64,000 bases of DNA from Blastocladiella emersonii ATCC 22665 (Eukaryota > Fungi > Blastocladiomycota). The stretch covers positions 62,001 through 126,000 of the forward strand of contig JANHCV010000016.1 in NCBI GenBank assembly GCA_025594325.1, given 5' to 3'. Positions 29,552 through 43,900 of the stretch are shown one piece after another. Each line of letters begins with the position of its first letter. The stretch's first letter is position 1. A model generated the notes under the pieces. It did not search any database. It was not told where the DNA came from and saw only the letters and a list, made by a program, of their open reading frames with translations. A program made the translations under genes and the position numbers.

Positions 29552-32500
29552 TCAATCCAGCAGCGACCAGTTCGGGTTCGACGACGGCGACGCGCTCGAG
29601 CCCGCGCCTGATGGCGGCGCGGACGTGAACCCGAGACTCGTCGACGACGCCCACGGGTTCGGCCCCGCCGCGGGCACCATGGCCGCCTGCAGCCCGAGCG
29701 GGTGGAACGACCCGGACCCGAGCCCGCTCGCGATCCCCGGGTTGCTCGGCGTCGACGTTGGCACCGCCCACCACTGCTGCAGATCCGAGCTCGGCGGCGG
29801 CAGCGCAGGTGCCGCGGCCGCGGCCGTTGCTGTTGAGGACGCAGACCCGTCGTCGTCGAGCGCGATCAGGACACCCGTCCACGCGCTGCTGCTTGCCTTG
29901 GCCGCAGTCGCGGCCGCCGACTTCTGCTCCTGCTCGGCCATGAGCACACGGAACGGGTTGCGCGACGTGCGCTGCGAGAACAGCGACTTGTAGATGGCCT
30001 GCTTGCGCGCGTGGTTGATCTCGACGGCTGCGACGCGCAGCAGCGCCAGCACGGGCTTGTGGTCCGACACCTTGAGCTCGGCGCGCGTGTACGAGAGCAG
30101 CTCGAACTTCATGGTGGTCGCGGCGGCGCCGTGCGCGGCCGACGGCGATGCCGCGCGGAGCGACGCCGCGGCCGCGGCAACCTTGGACGAGTTCTTGGAC
30201 TGGAACAGGATGCGGTCGCACCACGCCGGGATGCGGTTCTTCTCGGACGTGTCGTAGACGTCGGTGCCGTTGTTGTACCGGTACGTCGGCGGGAACGTGA
30301 TGGCGCCCTCGTCGTACCCGTGGAACGCGCGCTGCAGCCGGCGCTGGTTCAGCAGCTGGTCGCGCTGCAGCAGCTCGCCCAGGCTGCCCTGCGCCACGAG
30401 CCGCCGCACCGCCTCGTTCTCCATGTCGACGCGGTAGTTGAAGTCGCCGAACCACACAATGTGGTCGTGGTCCGGGATCGACCGCCCACGCTTGAACAGC
30501 GACTCGGACGCGATCGTCGCAAAGTCGTCGTTGCGGTCCTCGACGTTGGACTGACCCGCGGCGAAATGCGCCGTCACGAAGCAGAAGGGCGTGTCGTAGG
30601 CGGTGAGGCTGACGCTGATCCCGCCCTTGTTGCCCGTGATCCCGCCCATGCCCGTCTTGACAATCGACATCTCGACCGAGTGGATCGACGCCGTCAGCGC
30701 CGACTTGGCGAAGATGAAGATGGCCGCGCCCACGAGCTGCCCGTCGCACACGAGCACGTAGTCGTCACCGTGGCACCGGCGAATGACCTTGACCAGTTCT
30801 TTTCATGCGAGTGTGTCAGTGCCAGGAGCGAAAGCCGGGCAATCCCGAAAAGAAGCGTACCCTGCTGCCAGATCTGGCGCTTGACCGGGTCCGCCGACAC
30901 GATCTGGCCGGCCGTGAGCTCGACAATCTCCTGAAACCCGATAGCAAAGATATCGGGGCGCACGCCCGCGCCGTTCGACAGCCACGCGTCGAGTGGCTCT
31001 TGAGGCAGCCGGCCGTTGACGTTGTACGTGCCGACGTGGATGTGCAGGTCGTGCACGTGCGTGAACTCGGCGGCGCGCGCGTGCAGCTCGCGCTTGATCC
31101 CCTCGAGGACCGGGTCCCGCACCTCGAGCTTGCGCGTCTTGGTCTTGCCGAGCAGCGCGTCGATCGTGTCCTGGCGCGTCTTGTCCTGGAAGTTGTTGAT
31201 CACGAACCGGTTGACCGACTTGACCGAGTCGTCGAGCAGGCCCGCCAGCGTGCGCTTGCCCGACCGCGTGAAGCCCGACTTGAGCGCGCCGGTCCCGGCG
31301 TAGATGCGCGAGATGGCGTCGCCATTGTTGGCCCAGAGCTGCTTGAAGTCGTCCTCGAGGTGCACGGGGAGGCCCTGCGCAAAGTAGTTGAGCGCCTGCT
31401 GTGCGAGGAGGCCTTGGACGACGTTGGTGCTATGAATTGGGTAACAAGGGTCAGCGCGTGTCTCTGGGAGGTATCAGACGCTCGTACCGATCGAGGCAGT
31501 CGACACAGTTGACGCGAAACACGGCCGTCTGGTGCATGATGGCCTGGTGGTTTTGCGTGTCGACGAGGAAGCACATCATGCGCACGAGGTCAGGCTGGAC
31601 GCGGTCCACGAGCCGCGACAGCGCCGCGTAGTTGTTGCCCTTGCACTCGGCGTGAAAGTCGAAGTCGACGAGCCGGCGCTCGGTCGGCACCTTGGCCGGG
31701 TCCGCGTCGAACTGCGCCTTGTACTCGGTCGCGAGCACCGTCTCGCCGCCGCCGTCCTGCGACACGAGGTTGACAGCGATGATGCGGCCGTACCGGTCGT
31801 GCAGCTCGCCCATGTGCCGCTCGAACGCGGGCCGCGTCGCGTCGCGGGACCGGGTGACCTGCACCTTGTGCCCGACCACCTGGATGCCGGGCTGGTCCCA
31901 GAACACGGGCACGCTGCCGCGCACCTGCACGAACGACAGGAGCTGCTCGGGCGTGCGGTAGATCATCTCGGTTTCGACGTAGTTGGCCACGGCGCCCGCG
32001 TCGTCGATGCCGCGCGTGTTGTAGCGGGTGCCCGCGCGTCGGCTGCCCATGCGCGAGATGACTAACGAGCGAGAGCATGGGTGTGAGAGAACGTGCGGGC
32101 GGAAGGAGGAAAGTGAGCGTACTGGTGAGCGATCGCTGGCCGGCGTGCGCCTTACCGACGTAGCCCTGGATGACATTGATCTACACGCGGTAATCGAGTA
32201 CGGTGAGCTTGAAGAAGGAAACGGTGCCCGAAAGAGGAACGTACCAAAAACGACTGGTCCGACTCATTGAGCGCGGCCGCCGCCTCGAGCACAGAGACGA
32301 GCGGGCCCATCATGAACGCGTTCCAGACGAACTGCGAGTCCTGCGTCTGGTTGGGCTCGGGCGTGGTGGCGAGGTACTGCGCGGTGCGCGAAAGGTCGTA
32401 GCTGCTGGACGCGCCACCGGCGGCAAAGTAGAAGGTGCCCGACGCGAGGAGGCGCATGATGGCGTCGCAGGGGTGGACCGCGGACGCCGGGGTCGCTGTG

Positions 32501-33082
32501 CCCGGCGCACCCGACCCCGTGAAGTCGTCGTCGTAGAAGGAGCGCGCGACGGGCGCGTGGACGCGGTCGTAGACGTCGGAGGAGAGGGAGATGCTACGGC
32601 AATAGGGAGTGGCGGGGTGAGTACGCGCAACGCGGAAACGCATGGCGCACGACAACGACGTACAACTCGACGGCGGTGATCTGGCGGACGGGAGTGCCGT
32701 CAATGTCGGCAACGACATCGGCCGCGGTCACGACACCCACAAACGCGTCGTCGCCGACGATGAGGACGCCGAGGAGGCCGAGGACTGGGATGGGCGGGCG
32801 AGAGGTGTAGGTGAGGAGCTCAATGGACTGTGCGGGCTGGACGCGGGCGTTGAGGGTGACCTTGGCAGCGGTCTGCTCGACGGTGCGGAGGAGGAGGGCG
32901 ACGTCGGGTCCCGACTCGGAGCTGTTGCTGTTGTTGGCGACGAGGACGACCTCTCGCGGCGAGTTCTTGACGAGCAGCGAGAAGGGGGCGGCTGTAGCGG
33001 GCACTGGCGGCGGCAAGCGCGTCCCGCTCCCGCTGCCGTTGGCCGCGAAGGGCGGAGCCTGCTGTTGCTGGGAGTAGTTCAT
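29552..33082 (-). CDS. INP52: Synaptojanin-like polyphosphoinositide phosphatase (Sac1 + 5-phosphatase), multi-exon
   Basis: RRAGTRYNTRGID, QVRGSVPVFW, catalytic NCVDCLDRT (split by an intron), 5-phosphatase WFGDFNYR and PTYRY...PAWCDRILF. INP52 versus INP53 cannot be resolved. Confidence 0.9.
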
Positions 33083-33386
33083 GGAAGTCGCGTCGTTGAT
33101 GTGACAGTGGTTGGGTTGCGCCGAGTCAGTTGGTCTCAATCACGAGAATGCTTCATGTGCGCGGGGGCCAATTTGCGAGAGGGAGGGAGAGAGCAGGGGA
33201 GGAGAGGAGGGATCAGGGCGGGGAGGCTGCCCCGGCCGCCCGCGCGTCGCTCGTGTCGCTCGTGTCGCTCGCTCGCCGCCGCCCACCGCACGCGTGCAGC
33301 GAGGCGGGCGCTGAAGATGAAGCGCGAGGGTGAGGCTTGAACGTACATAATGTCGCGCGGCGGACTGAAGATATGAGCAACAACAT

Positions 33387-33458
33387 GGGGGTGTAGCTCA
33401 GTGGTAGAGCGCTCGCTTCGCATGCGAGAGGCCCCGAGTTCGATCCTCGGCTCCTCCA
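33387..33458 (+). tRNA. tRNA-Ala(CGC)
   Basis: GGGGGTGTAGCTCAGTGGTAGAGCGCTCGCTTCGCATGCGAGAGGCCCCGAGTTCGATCCTCGGCTCCTCCA. Folds as a cloverleaf with anticodon CGC and the G3:U70 alanine determinant, followed by a T-run terminator. Confidence 0.93.
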
Positions 33459-33917
33459 TTTTTCTCCCCTGCCCTTGCTTTTGCCCTCCGCTGGTTTGGT
33501 CGCAGGGGTTGGTTGATTGCTGCCGACGCGCCTGCGAGAGCCCTCTCCGCCACCCGCCGTGATCGTTCGGTCGCTCACTCGACCGTCTGCGGTGCGCCAA
33601 GCCACGAGAGGCGACGCGTCGCGTAGCAGCCGCTCCGTTTTGATCCTCGCTGTGATGCCAGCGGTCCGCTCGCACTCGGCTCCACTTCCCCCTCGTACAG
33701 CTGAGCATCTTACTGAGCTTTCAAGAACATCAACTGAGGGAGGGCGAGGAGAGTCCAGTGAAGAGACTATGAAAAAATGCTATTTTGCGATGAAATATGA
33801 GAGAGGGCAAAGCTAGATCAGGGTCGAGCCGCGCGCGCGAGGGTGCCGTGAGCGACAAATGCTCGCGCGCGCGGGTACAAAATCGAGACTTGAGAGAAAC
33901 TCCGACAACGATGGCGC

Positions 33918-34673
33918 TTAGCAGCAGCCGTTGTTGATGGGCAAGATCGTGACAACGTCGCTGCCGCAGTCGCCGTGGTTGTTGATGGGCATGATGTGGA
34001 AGTCGCCGCCGTTGCCGCAGTCGCCCGAGGGACCCCAGGTCGCCGGGTTGCCGCCGACGAAGCCGTCGGCCGAGTGGTGGCCCTGGAACTGCGTCTGCGA
34101 CTGCGACTGCGACTGGAACGCGTCGCCGTGGCCGGTCGACCACTGGCCCTGCGACTGCGACTGGTGCTGCGCGGCCGAGCCGTGGTCACCGCCCCACTGC
34201 GACTGCGACTGCGACTGCTGCTGAGCGGCGCCGCCGTGGCCGGCACCCCACTGCGACTGCTGCTGCGCCTGCGCCTGCGACTGGTCGACCGAGCAGTGGT
34301 TGCCCCAGCTGCTCCAGTCGTTGCTGCCCTGGAACTGCGACTGCGACTGCGACTGCGACTGCGACTGAGCGCCGTGGCCGCCGTTGCCCCACTGGGCCTG
34401 CGACTGCGACTGCTGCTGAGCGCTCGTGCTGCCGTGGCCGAACTGCATCTGCGACTGCGACTGGGCCTGGTCGACGGAGCAGTGGTTGCCCCAGTTGCCC
34501 TGGAACTGGCTCTGCGACTGCGACTGCGCGGCATCGCCGCCGTGCGACCACTGCGACTGGCTCTGCGACTGCGACTGGGCGCCGTGGCCGCTGCCCCACT
34601 GAGTCTGCGACTGCGACTGCGACTGCGACTGCTGCTGGACGGCGGGGACGTGGATCGGGGCGCAGAAGGTCAT
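33918..34673 (-). CDS. Gln/Ser-repeat low-complexity protein, 251 aa (copy 1)
   Basis: ATG in CACCAAGATG context about 90 nt after a TATA box. Ten (Qx)n-W/F-Gly/His repeats, a Cys-containing C-terminus and a TAA stop. Confidence 0.75.
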   Translation of the reverse strand: MTFCAPIHVPAVQQQSQSQSQSQTQWGSGHGAQSQSQSQSQWSHGGDAAQSQSQSQFQGNWGNHCSVDQAQSQSQMQFGHGSTSAQQQSQSQAQWGNGGHGAQSQSQSQSQSQFQGSNDWSSWGNHCSVDQSQAQAQQQSQWGAGHGGAAQQQSQSQSQWGGDHGSAAQHQSQSQGQWSTGHGDAFQSQSQSQTQFQGHHSADGFVGGNPATWGPSGDCGNGGDFHIMPINNHGDCGSDVVTILPINNGCC

Positions 34674-34764
34674 CTTGGTGTGTTGGTGGGTCGGTGCGAC
34701 GGCTCAAGGTGTGGGTGGTGGGTGATCTTTTTCGACTCGAAGTGGGACCGAGGGGCTGTCCCTC

Positions 34765-34770
34765 TTTATA
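34765..34770 (-). promoter_or_regulatory. TATA box of Gln/Ser-repeat gene copy 1
   Basis: GTATAAAG on the minus strand, preceded by (GAGCGC)n repeats. Confidence 0.55.
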
Positions 34771-35094
34771 CTCTGGCTCGCTCGCGCTCGCGCTCGCGTT
34801 CTCGCGCTCTCACCGCTCACCAAGACGCGTGCATGCTATTCCGAGAAATACGCAAGAGCAACGGAAAAACCGGCAGGCGCAGCGCTGAACGACGCGTCGC
34901 TATACTTGGCGGCGGCATCCCTGAACCGCCGGCCGCTACGCCGCGACACGTTTCAAAGCGTCTTCGCTGCGTTGCCGTCGCGCTCTCACCGCTCCCCGCA
35001 CTCCTCGCACTTCAGCCGCATATCAACCGTTCGTGGGAGATCGCTCACGCGTTGGGGGTAGGCAGGCAGGTCGGATTGCAGCGGCCGGCGGTTC

Positions 35095-35425
35095 GTACGT
35101 GTGTGCTGTAAGTTTGGGTCACTTGCACTTTGATGCAGCGACTGAGAGCTCATGACGTGAAATACGCAGTAACGGCAGGTGGGCGCGTGAACGGATTGAG
35201 TGGAGGTGGCCGTGGAAACTGTCCCGCGCCGGCTGTCTCGCGGCCTGGGTCGCGTTGCGCCACACCCCACGTGATTCTTCGACGCGTCAACTGGCGATCC
35301 ACGGGCGCTCGGTTGCCACTGAGGGGAACCGAGCAGGGCCGTGTAACAGCGTGCTTGTACTAATCGGAACTCCTTTGGCTTTCTCGTTCAGTCGGCAAGC
35401 AGCGAACCGGTCCACGCTTCATGAG
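35095..35425. repeat. Diverged inner extension of the inverted repeat (pairs with about 38425-38761)
   Basis: Visible but imperfect reverse-complement similarity, with identical blocks 35243-35276/38573-38606 and 35345-35370/38478-38503. Confidence 0.75.
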
Positions 35426-35741
35426 TCCGTCATGCCAGCGTCGGTCTGCTTGGACATGAGACCAACCCACCCGCAAGGATCCTGCTCACAGACGCTGACT
35501 GCTACTTTTTCACATGCGGAGGGTGCGTTGTCTCGAGGAAAGTGCAAAAGCGATGACAGGGGCGATTCTTCCGGTTCTTTGTCAGCGCGCGCGCCCAAAG
35601 GGAGCCCCGATCGCGATCACACGGGGCGGTGGAAACCGTTTGCTCGCGCGCGCGAGGATTTCGAGCTGCGGCGGGTCTTATGCCTTCGACCTCGCGCTCC
35701 GCTTTTTCTCTCCCCGCCCTCCATCACCACGACCGGTTGCA

Positions 35742-37646
35742 ATGAATACAGCAAGCGAATATCTCGCCGTCGTATCCAACGCGGTTGCGCCGCTCAAGGC
35801 GCAGGCGGCCGATCTGCTCGGCCCGCTCGTCAACATCCTCGGCCCGCGCAAGTCGGTGCTCCTGGCCGCGCTGTCGACGGTCGCCGTCCTCTGCGCGCGG
35901 TTCTGGTACCGCAATATCCGCGTACCGCCGAGCCTGCGCCATGTGCCGCGGCTCACCGTGTGGCAGACGATCCGCGTCATGACGTCGGGCGCGGGCTTCC
36001 TCGACTCGGTCGACCAGCAGCTGCGCATCGTGCGCACCGACGCGCTCAAGCGCGGCGTCATCCAGCACGCGAGCGAGACGCCCAAGATCTGGCTGATCTG
36101 GTTGTATGTGTACTTGACGCGTTCTCTGTCTTTGACGCGGCCTCACGTTCGTTCGATCCATCCGTAGCCTCGGCAGCTGGGCCGTCGTGATTGCCAACCC
36201 GGCCGACATCAAGTCGCTGCTGCTCGGTCACGAGGTGTTTGACAAGTTCGAGATGACGCGCATGGGCCTGCAGGCGACCGCCGACTTCATGGGCACGAAC
36301 CTCGCGCTCGCCAATGTACGCGCGCTGGTGCTGCTACTCTCCTCGTGCACCTCACTGACGATCTCTCTCTCATGGCAGACGGCCGGGTGGAAGCGCCAGC
36401 GCAAGGTTGTGAGCCCCATCTTCCGCCGCGGCTGGGCCACGTCGCTGTTCAGCGAGCCGACGCGCATCCTGCTCAGCAAGTTCGACGCGATCGTGGATAC
36501 CAAGGGCGCGACCGTCGACGTGCCCGAGTGGATGATGCGCATCACGCTCGACGCGCTGTGCTCGTCTGCGTTCGGGACCAACATCGACTCGCTCAACCAC
36601 CCCGACTCGCCCATTGTGCGCTCGTACATTGCCGCCATGGAGGGCATGTTCAACCCCAAGTTCACGATCCTCGCGCCCGTCGCGTGGGTCATGCCCGAGT
36701 ACTGGGCCTACAAGCGCGCCGTTGACGAGTTCAACCGCTACGTGTACCAGATGATTGACGCCAAGGCCGACGAGATTGCCAAGCGCGCCGGCAGCATCAG
36801 CAGCAATGCGGGCGACGACAGCGACGAGAACAACGTCAAGGACCTGCTCGAGACCATGATCATCGCGGGCCAGTCGGGCGGCTTCTCGCGCGAGGACCTG
36901 CGCGCCAACACGGTCGCCTTCTTTGTCGCGGTACGCTCGTTCGTCGCTCTCGTTTCACGAGCTGCGAATACTGACGCTGCGCTCGCGAATGTGCACAGGG
37001 TCACGACACGACGGCCAACGCGCTCACGTTCGCGCTGTACCTGCTCGGGATGCACCCCGAGATCCAGCGCAAGGCGCGCGCTGAGGTGCTCGCCGTCATG
37101 GGCGACGTGGAACAGGGCACGCCCGCCGAGGACTTCCCGTACCCGACCAACGACGAGCAGCAACGGATGTCGTACGTGACCTACGTGATCAAGGAGACGA
37201 TGCGGTTGTACCCGAGCGTGGGCAACCTCCCGCCACGCATCTTGACCAGCCCCGCGATCCTATCCGATGGGTCGCGCGTTCCCGCGGGCACCATCGTGAG
37301 TGGCAACACGATCGCGATCCACCGCGACTGCGCGCAGTGGGGCGACGACGCGGACGAGTTCAAGCCCGAGCGGTGGGCCGACCTCGGGGTGGGCGCTGAC
37401 GGCGCGATCCCGATGCACCCGAGTGCGCACGACTTCAAGTGGGTCCCGTTCGGCGGCGGGCAGCGCATCTGCCCTGGCCAGTCGTTTTCGATCATCGAGC
37501 AGCGCGTGGTCCTGTCGATGCTGCTGCTGCGCTACGAGTGGACGGTCGCCGGGAACAAGGCCGCGCTCGCGGGCAGGCCCGGGTCGGTGCCTGGCGTGAT
37601 GCTGCGCGCCAAGGGGATCGAGCTCGCGCTCAAGCGGCGCAACTGA
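35742..37646 (+). CDS. Cytochrome P450, 4 exons
   Basis: Introns near 36104-36167, 36316-36379 and 36931-36998. Motifs FFVAGHDTT, ETMR, PERW and heme FGGGQRICPG. Confidence 0.93.
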
Positions 37647-37891
37647 TTTGTGCGTTCGCTCGTAGTAACGGCGCAGATATATATACGCATAGTTCATCCC
37701 TTGTTTGGCATACACAGTGGCAGCACTCCTGGTTGGAGTAGCTCCGCCGTCACGGCGGGCTGCTCCTGACGCGTCGATCATCTCCACGTGGCGTCATTCT
37801 CCGCGTGGCGATCCGCCCGAGCTGACCAACGAGCTGAGCAACGCGCGCTCACGGCGCTCTCTCTATCAAGGCTGTCCAGCAAACTACCGCA

Positions 37892-38256
37892 ATGACAAGC
37901 ACCATCAATGTACTCGATGCAATGAGCAAGGCCATCGCGCCTCTTCGCGTCGAAACGCGCCTCGCCCCGCTCGCGCGACTCGTCAAGGCACTCGGCCCGC
38001 GCAAATCGGTGCTCCTCGCTGCCCTCGCGACGGCGGCCATGCTCGCGGCGCGCGTGTGGTGGAAGGTGGTCCGCGTCCCGCCGCACCTCCGCCATCTGCC
38101 GCGCGTGTCCTTCTTGCAGACCGTCCGGCTCCTGCTCTCGGGCGAGGGCTTCCTCACCTCGCGGCCCGCCTTCCTCAAGCTGCTGTGCGAGGACGCGCTC
38201 CGCCGCGGCGCCATCACGTCGCCCGCACAGACTCCGCGCGTCTGGCTCGAGTGGAT
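37892..38256 (+). pseudogene. Orphan first exon of a paralogous P450
   Basis: LGPRKSVLLAAL...RVPPHLRHLPR...DALRRG aligns to exon 1 of 35742-37646 and ends at an equivalent phase-2 GT donor. No exon 2 follows before the inverted-repeat arm. Confidence 0.75.
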
Positions 38257-39085
38257 GTACGTGCTCGCAGAATTCCCCTGTCATCGTCTTTGCATGCTCT
38301 GTGAGACAACCCTCGCCGTGTGAAAAAGTAGAAGCCAGCGCCTGGTCTGAGAGCAGGAGCCTCGCTTAGAGGGTTCGACCCATGTCCAAGTAGTCCGACA
38401 CTGGCGCGACAGAAGCATACCACTCATGAAGCGTGGACCGATTCGCTGCTCACCTACTAGACGGGAACACCAAAGGGGTTCCGATTAGTACAAGCACGCT
38501 GTTGCTCGACGCCGTTTCGTCTCCTCGTGAGCAAGCGAGGGCCATCGCGGATCGCCAGTTGACGCGCCGAACAATCACGTGGGGTGTGGCGCAACGCGAC
38601 CCAGGCTGCGAGACAGTCGCTGCGAGACAGTTTCCGCATCCACCTCTACCCAATCTGTTCGCGCGCCCATGTGCCTCTACCGAGCGTCCCACGACAAGAC
38701 GACAAGAGGACTTCGTAGCCGCGGCAAAAGCGCACCCGCTCCGAATTTACGACACACGCAGGAACCGCCGGCCGCTGCAATCCGACCTGCCTGCCTACCC
38801 CCAACGCGTGAGCGATCTCCCACGAACGGTTGATATGCGGCTGAAGTGCGAGGAGTGCGGGGAGCGGTGAGAGCGCGACGGCAACGCAGCGAAGACGCTT
38901 TGAAACGTGTCGCGGCGTAGCGGCCGGCGGTTCAGGGATGCCGCCGCCAAGTATAGCGACGCGTCGTTCAGCGCTGCGCCTGCCGGTTTTTCCGTTGCTC
39001 TTGCGTATTTCTCGGAATAGCATGCACGCGTCTTGGTGAGCGGTGAGAGCGCGAGAACGCGAGCGCGAGCGCGAGCGAGCCAGAG

Positions 39086-39091
39086 TATAAA
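39086..39091 (+). promoter_or_regulatory. TATA box of Gln/Ser-repeat gene copy 2
   Basis: CAGAGTATAAAGAGG about 90 nt upstream of ATG 39183. Confidence 0.55.
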
Positions 39092-39182
39092 GAGGGACAG
39101 CCCCTCGGTCCCACTTCGAGTCGAAAAAGATCACCCACCACCCACACCTTGAGCCGTCGCACCGACCCACCAACACACCAAG

Positions 39183-39938
39183 ATGACCTTCTGCGCCCCG
39201 ATCCACGTCCCCGCCGTCCAGCAGCAGTCGCAGTCGCAGTCGCAGTCGCAGACTCAGTGGGGCAGCGGCCACGGCGCCCAGTCGCAGTCGCAGAGCCAGT
39301 CGCAGTGGTCGCACGGCGGCGATGCCGCGCAGTCGCAGTCGCAGAGCCAGTTCCAGGGCAACTGGGGCAACCACTGCTCCGTCGACCAGGCCCAGTCGCA
39401 GTCGCAGATGCAGTTCGGCCACGGCAGCACGAGCGCTCAGCAGCAGTCGCAGTCGCAGGCCCAGTGGGGCAACGGCGGCCACGGCGCTCAGTCGCAGTCG
39501 CAGTCGCAGTCGCAGTCGCAGTTCCAGGGCAGCAACGACTGGAGCAGCTGGGGCAACCACTGCTCGGTCGACCAGTCGCAGGCGCAGGCGCAGCAGCAGT
39601 CGCAGTGGGGTGCCGGCCACGGCGGCGCCGCTCAGCAGCAGTCGCAGTCGCAGTCGCAGTGGGGCGGTGACCACGGCTCGGCCGCGCAGCACCAGTCGCA
39701 GTCGCAGGGCCAGTGGTCGACCGGCCACGGCGACGCGTTCCAGTCGCAGTCGCAGTCGCAGACGCAGTTCCAGGGCCACCACTCGGCCGACGGCTTCGTC
39801 GGCGGCAACCCGGCGACCTGGGGTCCCTCGGGCGACTGCGGCAACGGCGGCGACTTCCACATCATGCCCATCAACAACCACGGCGACTGCGGCAGCGACG
39901 TTGTCACGATCTTGCCCATCAACAACGGCTGCTGCTAA
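39183..39938 (+). CDS. Gln/Ser-repeat low-complexity protein, 251 aa (copy 2, identical)
   Basis: Translation is identical to 33918-34673. Confidence 0.75.
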   Translation: MTFCAPIHVPAVQQQSQSQSQSQTQWGSGHGAQSQSQSQSQWSHGGDAAQSQSQSQFQGNWGNHCSVDQAQSQSQMQFGHGSTSAQQQSQSQAQWGNGGHGAQSQSQSQSQSQFQGSNDWSSWGNHCSVDQSQAQAQQQSQWGAGHGGAAQQQSQSQSQWGGDHGSAAQHQSQSQGQWSTGHGDAFQSQSQSQTQFQGHHSADGFVGGNPATWGPSGDCGNGGDFHIMPINNHGDCGSDVVTILPINNGCC

Positions 39939-40397
39939 GCGCCATCGTTGTCGGAGTTTCTCTCAAGTCTCGATTTTGTACCCGCGCGCGCGAGCATTTG
40001 TCGCTCACGGCACCCTCGCGCGCGCGGCTCGACCCTGATCTAGCTTTGCCCTCTCTCATATTTCATCGCAAAATAGCATTTTTTCATAGTCTCTTCACTG
40101 GACTCTCCTCGCCCTCCCTCAGTTGATGTTCTTGAAAGCTCAGTAAGATGCTCAGCTGTACGAGGGGGAAGTGGAGCCGAGTGCGAGCGGACCGCTGGCA
40201 TCACAGCGAGGATCAAAACGGAGCGGCTGCTACGCGACGCGTCGCCTCTCGTGGCTTGGCGCACCGCAGACGGTCGAGTGAGCGACCGAACGATCACGGC
40301 GGGTGGCGGAGAGGGCTCTCGCAGGCGCGTCGGCAGCAATCAACCAACCCCTGCGACCAAACCAGCGGAGGGCAAAAGCAAGGGCAGGGGAGAAAAA

Positions 40398-40469
40398 TGG
40401 AGGAGCCGAGGATCGAACTCGGGGCCTCTCGCATGCGAAGCGAGCGCTCTACCACTGAGCTACACCCCC
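40398..40469 (-). tRNA. tRNA-Ala(CGC), duplicate
   Basis: Reverse complement of 33387-33458. Confidence 0.92.
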
Positions 40470-40773
40470 ATGTTGTTGCTCATATCTTCAGTCCGCCGCG
40501 CGACATTATGTACGTTCAAGCCTCACCCTCGCGCTTCATCTTCAGCGCCCGCCTCGCTGCACGCGTGCGGTGGGCGGCGGCGAGCGAGCGACACGAGCGA
40601 CACGAGCGACGCGCGGGCGGCCGGGGCAGCCTCCCCGCCCTGATCCCTCCTCTCCTCCCCTGCTCTCTCCCTCCCTCTCGCAAATTGGCCCCCGCGCACA
40701 TGAAGCATTCTCGTGATTGAGACCAACTGACTCGGCGCAACCCAACCACTGTCACATCAACGACGCGACTTCC

Positions 40774-40926
40774 ATGAACTACTCCCAGCAACAGCAGGCT
40801 CCGCCCTTCGCGGCCAACGGCAGCGGGAGCGGGACGCGCTTGCCGCCGCCAGTGCCCGCTACAGCCGCCCCCTTCTCGCTGCTCGTCAAGAACTCGCCGC
40901 GAGAGCGTGAGATCAGGGAAGCATGA
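40774..40926 (+). pseudogene. Duplicated 5' fragment of the synaptojanin gene forming a 50-codon chimeric ORF
   Basis: MNYSQQQQ...LLVKNSPRE is identical to the synaptojanin N-terminus up to the repeat edge (40905), then reads REIREA-stop in unrelated sequence. Confidence 0.7.
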
Positions 40927-43900
40927 ATGTATTGAGGTCCAGCTGTCCAACGTCGAAGCTCAGGTCGCCGATCGTTGCTTGAGGCGGGTTCCTTGCCACA
41001 GGCGAACCGGGCACCTGGCGCGCGGCGGCGGGTTCGGTCTCTCTCGACGGTGCCTGCTGGGTTGGGAATGGAGCAGCAGTCCCCACCGCGCCGTTGGCCA
41101 TGCCGAACAGCTGGCACATGGCGCGCCACTTGTTCGCAAGCGCGCGGTACTGCTCCGTGACGCGCTGCACCTCGACCTGCTTCGCGTGCGTCGCGGCGCG
41201 GAGCTGGTCGTCGAGCTCGGCCGCGCGGCGCTGGACCTGGGTGAGCTCGACGGCACGCGCGTCGCGGTCCTGCTCGGTCGCCGTGAGCCGCGCCTGCGTC
41301 TGCTGCAGGAGCCGCTTGAGCTCGTCGACCGCCAAATCGCGCGCGGCGAGCTTGTCGCGCACGTCGCCCTCGGCGCGCTCGAGCTTGGCCGCGAACGTGG
41401 CGCGCAGTTTGGCGGCTTCGGCCTCGATCAGCGCCAGAGACTCGTTGCGCTCCTCGAGCTTGGCGTGCAGCGCGGCAGCCTGGTCGCGCGCCTCGTTGCG
41501 CTCCTCGCGGTACTGGCTCGCCAGGTCCTCGAGCTGCTGCACCTCGCGCTCGCGGTGCTGGAGCTACTCTTGCGAAGGGAGGTCAGTCGCTGGGTCGGAT
41601 GGCGAGCGAGCAAGCGCACCTCGAACTGCATCTCGCGCGCGCCCTCGGCCGCCCGCTTGACCTCGTTGAACTCGGCGACCTTGGCGGCGAGATTCGCTTT
41701 CAGCGCGCGCAGCGACTCGGCCTGGTCCTCGACCTGCTTGTCCTTGATCCGCACCGCCTGCTGCGCGGCCGCGAGCTCGGCGCGCACACGTTCCCGTTCC
41801 TCGCTCGCCGCTTTGGCCTCGCCGCGCACCTGCTCGAGCTCGCGGCGCACACCCTCGAGCTCAGCGACCGCGCGGTCGCCGGCATGCACGCGGTTCGTGC
41901 ACTGCAGCGCCGTCTGCTTGGCGTGGTTGCGCGCGGCCTCGGCCGCGGCGTGTGCGGCGCGCAGCTTGTCAGCGAGCTTCTTGGTCTTGTGCTCGTACAG
42001 CTGCTCGAGGTCGGTCACCGACTGCGCGAGCCCCGCGATCTTGGCCTGCTGCGCGTGCACGACGCGCCCGAGGTCCTGCTTCTCGCGTGTCTGGGTGTCG
42101 AGCTGCGCGCGGAGGTCGGCCGCTTGCGCGAGGGACTCGTCGAGCTGGCGCTGCAGCGCCGCGTTGCGCTCGTGCACGCGCGCGATCTCGGCCTGTGCGT
42201 CCTTGACGTGCGCCGCCTGCTCGGCCGTGGCGCGGACGAGGTCACACTCGAGCGCCGCGCGTGCGGTCTTGGCTTCGTCGACTTGCCGGTGCAGGTCGCG
42301 CGTGTTGGCCTCGTGCTGCTGCGCCAGTGTCGAGCGCACCGAGGCGAGCTCGGCGTCGTGGCGTCTATACACGGCGGAGTGGGTTGGCACAGGTTGCGAG
42401 GGCATTTGGTGGAGAGCGTACCGCTGAGCGTCTTGAAGCTGGGCCTGGTGCTTGCGCTCCTGCTCGCGGATCTGGTCGCGCAGCGCCTGCACGTCAACCG
42501 ACACGTCGCGAACAATGTTTTTGAGCGACGCTAGCTGCTCCTTAGCCTACCCACTTGGACCACGTTAGCGATGCCAAAGAGGTTAACCAAGTCCAGCGCA
42601 CCTCGGCGAGCTTCTCCCGCGCAGCCTCCTTATCGCGGACCGCCTTGGCCAGCGCGCGCTTGCCCTCAGACTCGGCGACCCGGAGCCGGCGCTCGAGGTC
42701 GACTCGCGTGGCGGACTCGCGCGACAGCCCGTCCTTGGCGGCGGTACACTCGCGCTCGAGGACCGCGACGCGGGACCGCGCCGCCTCGAGCTCCTTGGCA
42801 ACCGCCGCCGACCGCGCACGCTCGGCCTGGAGCTGTTCCGCTATCCCGCGCATCTCGCGCGCACGGTCGTGCTCGACCTGCTGCATGCGGCGCGCCTCGA
42901 GCTCGAGTGCCGCGAGCGTCTGCTGGGTCGCGGCGCGGGATGCGGCGTCGGCTACAGGTTCGGGGGCCGGCGGTGGTGGCGGTGGTGGCGGGGCGGGGCG
43001 GCGCGCGGTCTGGGCCTTGGCCGCGGCCCGCTCGAGCTTGGCGAGCTGCTGCTTCACGGCCGACAGCTCGGACTCGAGCCCCGCGGCCTTGGACTGGCTC
43101 GACATGGCGCGGACCAGGTCGGCCATCATGGTGTGCAGCTGCACGAGGGCCGGGTCGGGCAGCGGCGGAGGCTGTTGCAGCTGTTGCGGTTTCGCGGGGC
43201 TCGGGAACTGGTGCGGCAGCGGCGCGGGATCGGTGGCCACGGGCTGCCGCGGCAGACAAACAGGTGCTGGTGCGGCTACGGCCGGAGCAGGCGGTGCTGA
43301 GGTCGGTGGTGCGGGGAGCGGGATGCTCGTGTCGGGGAGGAGGAACGACATGTCGATGGCGACCTGGACGGGCGCGCCATTGCGGTCGACGCGGTCGAGC
43401 GACTGCAGCGAGCGCGAGAGCGACCACACGATGCCCTGCGTGCTCGCGTCGTCCGAGACGGGGTTGCCCTCGAGCAGCAGATGTCGCAGGTTCTACTCGG
43501 AGCGTGCGCGTCAGTCCTGCATCAAAGACTGTCAAGCGAGCAACGTACGACAAGTCCAGAGAGGTAGTACAGCTCGGGAGACGCCGCTATCGCATTCCCA
43601 CGCACGTCGAGCACCTCGAGCGCGTATCCCGGCCCGTGCAGGTGGACGATCCCGACGAGCGAGTCGATGTTGTTGTGCGCGAGCACGAGCTTGCGCAGGC
43701 CCGTCAGCGTCTCGAGCCCCTGGATGCGCGATATCTCTCCTCGCATGGGAATCGCGGCGCGGCGACAGGTGTCAGCAACGTCCGCTGGGGAGTGTGCGAC
43801 GCGCGGCGAGAGCATACCCGGTTGTTGGCGAGATTGAGGATGCGCAGAAGACGGAGCCCGGCGACCCCTTCAATCTCCAGAATCTCGTTGGACGAGAGGT

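Follow-up and report, generated by a model that had tools for sequence, protein, structure and literature searches.

Curli subunits of the CsgA type are built from tandem strand-turn units with conserved Gln residues, Gly/Asn turns and few charges, and stacking through Gln/Asn ladders has been proposed for them. The glutamine/asparagine (Q/N)-rich prion domains of yeast Sup35 and Ure2, for which an in-register 'superpleated' β model exists, are nearly uncharged, irregular in sequence and joined to a functional globular domain. In silk fibroin, the two-residue alternation of (GAGAGS)n leads to two chemically distinct faces and to short crystalline blocks with turns between them, and low-complexity (S/Y/G/Q) domains of the FUS type are rich in Gln, Ser and Gly, with evenly spaced aromatic residues and almost no Lys, Arg or Glu. 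Here we analyze a repeat-protein gene that shares features with each of these systems. It is present in two copies, one in each arm of an inverted repeat, in a 64,000-nucleotide (nt) stretch of the fungus Blastocladiella emersonii ATCC 22665 (contig JANHCV010000016.1, positions 62,001 to 126,000, forward strand; hereafter the window, i.e., the whole stretch of DNA that was analyzed). An original prediction, made from the sequence alone, had described two identical open reading frames (ORFs) for a 251-residue (aa) protein, each with a GTATAAAG box, and had read the product as a candidate functional amyloid or β-solenoid. The positions and the identity of the two ORFs were confirmed, and the box is present at the right copy and, mirrored, at the left copy:

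39183-39938, + strand: repeat-protein gene, right-arm copy (251 aa; intron-less; stop codon included)
33918-34673, - strand: repeat-protein gene, left-arm copy (translation identical to that of the right copy; arms 100% complementary)
39085-39092, + strand: TATA box GTATAAAG of the right copy (TATAAA begins 97 nt upstream of the ATG; a C/A-rich leader with CAAGATG at its end comes next)
34764-34771, - strand: mirrored TATA box of the left copy (placed by the perfect complementarity of the arms)

Beyond the original prediction, the gene turned out to be a member of a family with at least 28 loci. A six-frame search over the 32.65-Mb, 21-contig genome of B. emersonii ATCC 22665 (the genome paper gives 21 contigs and 34.27 Mb for its PacBio HiFi assembly; PMC9730499) returned 94 matches, which fall into about 28 loci distributed over seven contigs; 93 of the matches had no internal stop. 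The distinct family ORFs, 24 in number, encode 117-326 residues and have common start and stop motifs. Only four of the about 28 loci are annotated in GenBank (H9P43_001837, H9P43_003992, H9P43_004015 and H9P43_004365), which leaves about 24 of the 28 apparently missing from the published B. emersonii protein set, and no exact-sequence match to the 251-aa protein of the window was found in a collection of 15 billion proteins. With almost no Lys or Arg, the family proteins yield no tryptic peptides, so that standard proteomics would miss them. One of the annotated loci, H9P43_001837 (428 aa; L018:2650-4461, contig C1, about 4.84 Mb), consists of an unrelated upstream ORF fused to a family member. 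This family member has its own conserved MTFCAPIHVPTVQ start, but no clear TATA box, and H9P43_001837 is probably a mis-fused gene model.

The repeat-gene region is open in all six frames, and hence frame openness alone is no proof of coding. When the window copy was compared with diverged paralogues, nucleotide similarity was confined to the interval from about 39160-39180 through 39941, i.e., from about 20 nt 5′ of the ATG to 3 nt past the stop codon, and in the comparison with the nearest paralogous palindrome identity was 98-100% in the ORF and 70-80% directly after the stop. Some 20 of the 24 ORFs have a TATA-like box at about -90 to -120, followed by a C/A-rich leader that ends in (C)AAGATG, even though the flanks are diverged. 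The ratio of non-synonymous to synonymous substitution (dN/dS, Nei-Gojobori) was 0.11-0.57 in the Gln/Ser frame for nine paralogue pairs, with this frame giving the minimum of the six in every pair, and it was well below 1 in the non-repeat tail too. Furthermore, the near-exclusion of Lys, Arg, Glu and Tyr holds although AAG, GAG and CGG are each a single step away from CAG, a very common codon here. As judged from these substitution ratios, the Gln/Ser frame is under purifying selection, and the Gln/Ser repeat genes very probably constitute a real protein-coding family.

The 251-aa protein contains ten alternating-Gln runs of 9-13 residues each. It had been predicted that each of ten Gln strands is capped by Trp or Phe and followed by a Gly/His turn; the ten runs and the turn after every one of them were borne out, but a Trp or Phe stands directly after only seven, and in the remaining three a Phe lies inside the run, just before Gly (..QFQG). 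The other features described for the protein were all found in the translation: WGNHCSVD occurs twice, the tail carries two GDCG..PINN units and ends in GCC, and there is no Lys, Arg, Glu or Tyr. The absence of a signal peptide also agrees with inspection by eye, which revealed neither a basic residue nor a long hydrophobic stretch at the N-terminus.

The same build is found throughout the family, with a conserved Pro-rich N-terminal motif, a series of 9- or 11-residue alternating-Gln runs with W/F caps and G/N/H/D turns, and a His/Cys-rich tail. The 24 family proteins hold 217 alternating-Gln runs, of which 189 have a length of exactly 9 or 11 residues. Gln is found at run position -7 in 142 of 144 runs and position -9 in 139 of 144, neither of which was fixed by the search pattern, whereas positions -1, -3 and -5 are Gln by construction of that pattern. 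The opposite face of the run is mostly Ser, with T, A, G, N, M, Q, F and W tolerated. Trp or Phe caps the run directly in 145 of the 217, and most of the others end in ..QFQG. Gly comes after the cap aromatic in 114 of 144 runs, and the next 4-6 residues are rich in G/N/H/D and are then often followed by Ala. Asp is missing from the run core and occurs at positions -10 and +2 to +7, and the His of the turn is variable (32/144 at position +3 and 45/144 at position +4), with Gly or Asn in its place. Inspection by eye shows turns of three types that follow one another in a recurring order (G-x-G-(H/N)-G-A, then x-x-H-G-D-A-A, then the long F-Q-G-N-W-G-N-H-x-S-V-D), which suggests a three-strand super-repeat.

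The overall composition of the family is Q 23.4, S 15.1, G 14.8, N 5.4, H 5.8, D 5.2, K 0.0, R 0.0, E 0.1 and Y 0.1%, and W plus F account for 8%, the aromatic residues being spaced mostly 15-19 residues apart. Lys, Arg, Glu and Tyr together number 11 in about 5,400 residues, with only four Lys plus Arg, and a Lys-Arg pair is found in none of the listed family ORFs. Only 12 residues of conserved N-terminus precede the first Gln run; they lack basic residues, include two Pro and frequently a His, and have the motif MTFCAPIHVPAVQ in subfamily A and MTFGPIFVPPVQ in subfamily B. The tail carries GGDFHI(M/L)PI.. and ..ILPI(N/H), and its last residues are GCC in subfamily A but NLM or GLA in subfamily B; the potential ligands in this region are His and 3-4 Cys in subfamily A, and in subfamily B there is no Cys and more His. 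Some members contain extra FVGGNPATWGPS repeats, and the number of Gln-run/turn units is variable.

The view that the protein matches no described family was upheld. A Pfam scan of the 251-aa protein gave no family at E<=10, a profile search of the PDB gave no match, the ESM Atlas provided no usable match, and the NCBIfam matches were of low complexity only, to staphylococcal SD-repeat adhesins and far under their cut-offs. In a full HMMER profile search of 1.84 billion representative proteins, with no length limit, two strong matches were obtained, both from B. emersonii, and eight weak ones that covered repeats only. The weak ones comprise a protein of Clavelina lepadiformis (98 aa, secreted), a pair of marine-transcriptome proteins with a VWA domain (in one case together with SUEL-lectin and chitin-binding domains), three proteins that have GGDPxTWxP repeats and hydrophobic segments at the N-terminus, and two further repeat-only proteins. 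A word-based protein search found three proteins, all from B. emersonii. These searches address annotated proteins, and unannotated copies in other blastoclad genomes would escape them; since most of the B. emersonii copies are themselves unannotated, copies in other blastoclads could well be invisible to protein searches. A scan of metagenome contigs with the family profile gave 133 pattern matches, none of which was confirmed by tblastn. In the literature, no paper was found that ties Blastocladiella to glutamine-rich proteins or that contains the heptapeptide in a relevant context, and a paper on expressed sequence tags gave no lead. Hence, by these sequence searches the family has no relatives found so far beyond B. 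emersonii and appears lineage-specific for now. The C. lepadiformis protein (CAK8690952.1, 98 aa, secreted) has three Q-S-Q-S-Q-x-x-x-G-H-G-A-Q units and shows 67% identity to the fungal repeat over 45 residues; its resemblance, and that of the other weak matches, the VWA/CBM14 proteins included, most likely reflects convergence.

The conservation of one face with a period of two, the fixed strand length, the turn formers and the near-exclusion of charge point to an extended (β) working state. Charged residues are known to disrupt in-register parallel Q/N-rich fibrils (PMC6877606), and the near-absence of Lys, Arg and Glu, together with the keeping of Asp off the run cores, may be explained by such a destabilization of in-register parallel stacking by charge. 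In the mechanism that we favor, each run would form a strand. One face of the run is nearly always Gln, the other consists of small polar residues (Ser, then Thr/Ala), a Trp or Phe stands at the end, and the runs are joined by 5-8-residue Gly/Asn/His/Asp turns of three types, which gives the three-strand super-repeat. The array is flanked by conserved Pro-containing motifs, MTFCAPIHVPAVQ on the N-terminal side and two (I/L)(M/L)PI(N/H) units on the C-terminal side. In the working state the chain would form a serpentine or hairpin array whose Gln faces build hydrogen-bonded ladders, and like molecules would stack into a cross-β or silk-like material. Capping or regulation of this growth would fall to the Pro-rich ends together with the His/Cys-rich tail. 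Capping elements are known to prevent uncontrolled growth of β-solenoids, and the conserved Pro-containing ends of the family may be their analogues. Since there is almost no Lys or Arg, no classical signal-peptide n-region, mitochondrial presequence or basic nuclear localization signal is possible; this, and the lack of any visible sorting signal, makes a cytosolic location the most likely one. The β conformation, the self-assembly, the cytosolic location and the cap role of the ends are inferred.

We give a probability of roughly 0.4 to the reading in which the family protein is cytosolic and self-assembles as cross-β. A fuller version, in which a cytosolic functional-amyloid or silk-like material specific to a life-cycle stage (e.g., the zoospore or the sporangium) is made of capped serpentine monomers by in-register Gln-ladder stacking, under developmental or metal/redox control, with copy number and identity kept by gene conversion in palindromes, is unlikely to hold in all its parts; roles in the spore wall, in the cyst wall or in storage are guesses. 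The original proposal of Gln-ladder β strands or a β-solenoid therefore stands in part: the invariant Gln face, the runs of 9 or 11 residues, the G/N/D/H turns and the exclusion of Asp from the core agree with it, but a folded β-solenoid is not shown, as structure prediction neither supports nor excludes a fold. Two AlphaFold2 runs were performed on shallow alignments of paralogues only. The 251-aa protein gave a low-confidence β meander with nine long strands on the Gln runs (mean predicted local distance difference test score, pLDDT, 41.2), and a 153-aa member of subfamily B gave coil and one helix (pLDDT 39.0). Several points weigh against cross-β self-assembly. With such alignments, both models have a mean pLDDT of about 40 and support no fold, the second one being coil and helix; no homologue with known structure or function was found in Pfam, the PDB, the ESM Atlas or the profile search of 1.84 billion proteins; a composition of Gln, Ser and Gly with evenly spaced aromatic residues and almost no charge also suits liquid-like prion-like domains; and the invariance of Gln follows in part from the way in which the runs were picked.

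The last but one of these points leads to the alternative that survives best, although it is a doubtful one. The protein could be a disordered sticker-and-spacer protein, with Trp and Phe as stickers and Gln/Ser/Gly as spacer, that forms reversible condensates or gels (e.g., zoospore ribonucleoprotein or storage granules) and has no ordered cross-β core. A pLDDT of about 40 is usual for disordered regions, and a protein with 23% Gln, 15% Ser, 15% Gly, 8% Trp plus Phe, almost no Lys, Arg or Glu and aromatic residues mostly 15-19 residues apart has a composition comparable to that of FUS-type low-complexity domains. However, a sticker-and-spacer protein needs neither a strict period-2 Gln face nor strands of 9 or 11 residues nor defined turns, and these indicate an extended ordered state.

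The turn His and Asp, together with the His/Cys-rich tail, could bind Zn, Cu or Ni, which would make the product a metal-binding or metal-buffering protein or a metal-cross-linked material. This is improbable. His (5.8%) and Asp (5.2%) are found mainly in the turns, the possible ligand number of the tail is about equal in subfamilies A and B, and W-G-x-G-H-G is loosely reminiscent of the PrP octarepeat. The turn His is nevertheless not conserved and is freely swapped for Gly or Asn, which weakens the earlier suggestion of His metal binding in the turns; moreover, the Gln face would be left without a role, and no metal-related genes were seen among the neighbours scanned. A copper site of the PrP-octarepeat kind, in which every repeat has a His followed by Gly-Gly and a nearby Trp, was rejected, since even at its commonest turn positions His is found in no more than 32-45 of 144 units and otherwise gives way to Gly or Asn.

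It is quite improbable that the proteins serve as a nitrogen or glutamine reserve, deposited before sporulation and degraded at germination, e.g., for hexosamine and chitin synthesis. Their content of Gln, His, Asn and Trp, all nitrogen-rich residues, is high, the family has many gene copies with TATA promoters, as is often the case for storage proteins, and the near-lack of Lys would be expected to limit ubiquitin-dependent turnover, but a reserve leaves the invariant Gln face, the fixed strand length, the conserved termini and a tail dN/dS well below 1 unexplained. Decidedly improbable is an extracellular wall, cyst-coat or adhesive matrix protein that leaves the cell by unconventional export. 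The sole outside proteins with similar repeats are secreted or of matrix type (the Clavelina protein, the VWA/SUEL-lectin/chitin-binding protein and the GGDPxTWxP-repeat proteins); against this, these matches are weak and confined to repeats, and the N-terminus is the short, Pro-containing one without a basic residue that was described above.

The two remaining alternatives depend on the context of the genes. In the window, this context is as follows:

32951-35104, unstranded: left arm of the inverted repeat (contains a tRNA-Ala gene, the repeat-protein gene and the 5′ end of a SacI-domain gene)
38752-40905, unstranded: right arm of the inverted repeat
33386-33459, + strand: tRNA-Ala(CGC), left arm
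40397-40470, - strand: tRNA-Ala(CGC), right arm
35105-38751, + strand: spacer between the arms (unique; cytochrome P450 gene and P450-like first-exon remnant)

The arms measure 2154 nt each, are 100% complementary and enclose a spacer of 3647 nt, and the 64-kb window contains no other repeat of >=200 nt. The P450 ORFs of the spacer lie at 36187-37176 and 37050-37643 (Pfam p450, E 4.6e-14 and 6.2e-38), and the first-exon remnant lies at about 37892-38320. The SacI homology domain is encoded at 31451-32173, just outside the left arm. At the outer end of the right arm (40774-40926, + strand) the promoter and the first ~49 codons of this SacI-domain (synaptojanin-like) gene are duplicated and then run into a stop; this truncated copy indicates that the right arm arose as an incomplete inverted duplicate of the left, original one. 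The repeat-gene DNA itself contains CAGTCG arrays of 2.5-5.7 copies, nested in higher-order units of 51-54 nt and 108 nt, and since the short arrays sit within such units it is not a plain microsatellite.

In the genome, seven pairs of family genes lie in inverted repeats with arms of 1.6 kb to >8.7 kb and an arm identity of 99.76-100%, different palindromes diverge from each other by 5-15%, and about half of the family copies are identical pairs inside palindromes. This pattern suggests that the identity of the pairs is probably maintained by arm-to-arm gene conversion. Comparable conversion in palindromes takes place in the ampliconic gene families of animal sex chromosomes. Two single family genes were located in the spacers of further inverted repeats (L032:151-1975/7077-8901, 1825 nt, 100%; L025:1455-2967/6573-8085, 1513 nt, 99%), and a PIF1-like helicase fragment at L032:2011-2598 may be a Helitron remnant. 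A second arm-P450-arm unit is found about 72 kb upstream on the contig of the window (L009/L010, C8 18.7-34.6 kb). Compared with positions 35000-40950 of the window, its spacer is 97% identical over 35542-38270, its arms match well only in the repeat-protein ORF and the 5′ flank, and past the stop codon they diverge sharply from those of the window. Such a mosaic between the two units suggests conversion tracts of different ages. The upstream palindrome has tRNA-Ala(TGC) downstream of the repeat-protein gene (L009:2996-3069 and L010:5765-5838), where the window has CGC, and the duplicated tRNA-Ala may have changed its isoacceptor.

The adjacency of tRNA-Ala is limited to these two palindromes of contig C8, and that of P450 genes to three loci, all of which share duplicated DNA. 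At the other loci the neighbours include an MFS transporter, Trm1, an M12B protease, a kinase, SMC, Tsr1, an arrestin and a helicase. A conserved gene neighbourhood for the family was rejected in view of this heterogeneity, and since the neighbours of the other loci are mutually unrelated the link to P450 is one of shared duplication and not of function. An ORF just downstream of a family member on contig C11 (L031:4715-5500, + strand, about 659.6-660.4 kb) matches the Cas12f1-like TNB domain (PF07282, E 1.3e-10) and is a candidate Fanzor/TnpB-like nuclease gene.

The P450 gene between the two window copies, and the P450 genes that adjoin two other loci, could be taken to mean that the repeat proteins are precursors of P450-tailored cross-linked peptides (of the type of ribosomally synthesized and post-translationally modified peptides, RiPPs) with W-x2-4-H units as cores, which is very improbable because the three P450-linked loci amount to one event, the other loci have unrelated neighbours, and there is neither a leader nor a Kex2-type site. 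A fungal repeat-type RiPP precursor of the ustiloxin/dikaritin kind was likewise rejected, with no Kex2 (Lys-Arg) sites and, by eye, no signal peptide. Finally, a non-functional hexanucleotide-repeat ORF, open by chance in GC-rich DNA and duplicated by an assembly artefact, has in its favor the six open frames, the annotation of only four of about 28 loci and the 100% identical arms, but is as improbable and is largely refuted, given that the similarity among paralogues covers the same interval as the ORF, that conservation extends to start, stop and TATA box, dN/dS is lowest in the Gln/Ser frame, the hexamer arrays are short and lie within higher-order units, the spacer is unique, the six other palindromes have an arm identity of 99.76-100% and not always 100%, and HiFi reads of about 10.5 kb on average (estimated from read totals, PMC9730499) are enough to span the 8-kb structure.

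Blastocladiella emersonii, a flagellated, early-diverging fungus that is water mould-like, has long been used as a model for zoospore development and fungal phototaxis. If the cross-β reading is true, the family would represent a rare multigene and probably intracellular functional-amyloid system in an early-diverging fungus, and its very regular sequence rule, a Gln face with an aromatic cap and a Gly turn, would help in the study and design of polar-zipper assemblies. In addition, the recurrent near-perfect palindromes that carry family genes offer a tidy case for the study of gene conversion in the genome of a fungus.

Among the known systems, curli CsgA shares with the family the tandem strand-turn units, the conserved Gln, the Gly/Asn turns and the scarcity of charges. 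In contrast to CsgA, however, the fungal protein has no match to the curlin repeat (Curlin_rpt) or to any other Pfam model, its N-terminus MTFCAPIHVPAVQ has, by eye, neither a basic n-region nor a long hydrophobic core, there are no dedicated secretion partners, and its strands are longer (9-11 residues) and strictly alternating, in a eukaryotic host and probably in the cytosol. Kinship with curli and HET-s, which the original prediction had named as examples of Gln-ladder structures, did not hold. Membership of the CsgA/CsgB family was rejected, as no Curlin_rpt match was obtained (Pfam, E<=10) and the neighbours are unrelated eukaryotic genes, and so was a signalling amyloid of the HET-s type, with no Pfam match and with an NLR (NACHT or NB-ARC) domain in none of about 26 neighbouring ORFs scanned. 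The Clavelina lepadiformis CAK8690952.1 and VWA/CBM14 marine proteins have the local unit in common with the fungal family, but the conserved motifs of its two termini are missing from them, and they have a signal peptide or extracellular domains. FUS-type domains resemble the family in their Gln, Ser and Gly content, evenly spaced aromatic residues and near-lack of Lys, Arg and Glu, and differ in that the fungal aromatic residues are Trp and Phe instead of Tyr (0.1%), the order is strictly period-2, and no RNA-binding or other domain is attached. With high Q/N/S/G and very few charged or aliphatic residues, the family falls in the compositional class of prion-like or Q/N-rich low-complexity proteins. 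The Sup35 and Ure2 prion domains are likewise Gln-rich and nearly uncharged, but the fungal family is a regular repeat over the whole protein, with conserved caps and at least 28 loci, and not an irregular domain joined to a globular one. Silk fibroin has a comparable two-residue alternation with two chemically distinct faces and turns between short blocks, and the fungal proteins depart from it by a face of Gln instead of Gly, by a size of only 12-35 kDa and by having no sign of secretion. Set beside these systems, the family appears as a polar-zipper design of unusual regularity, for which an amyloid or solenoid reading is plausible.

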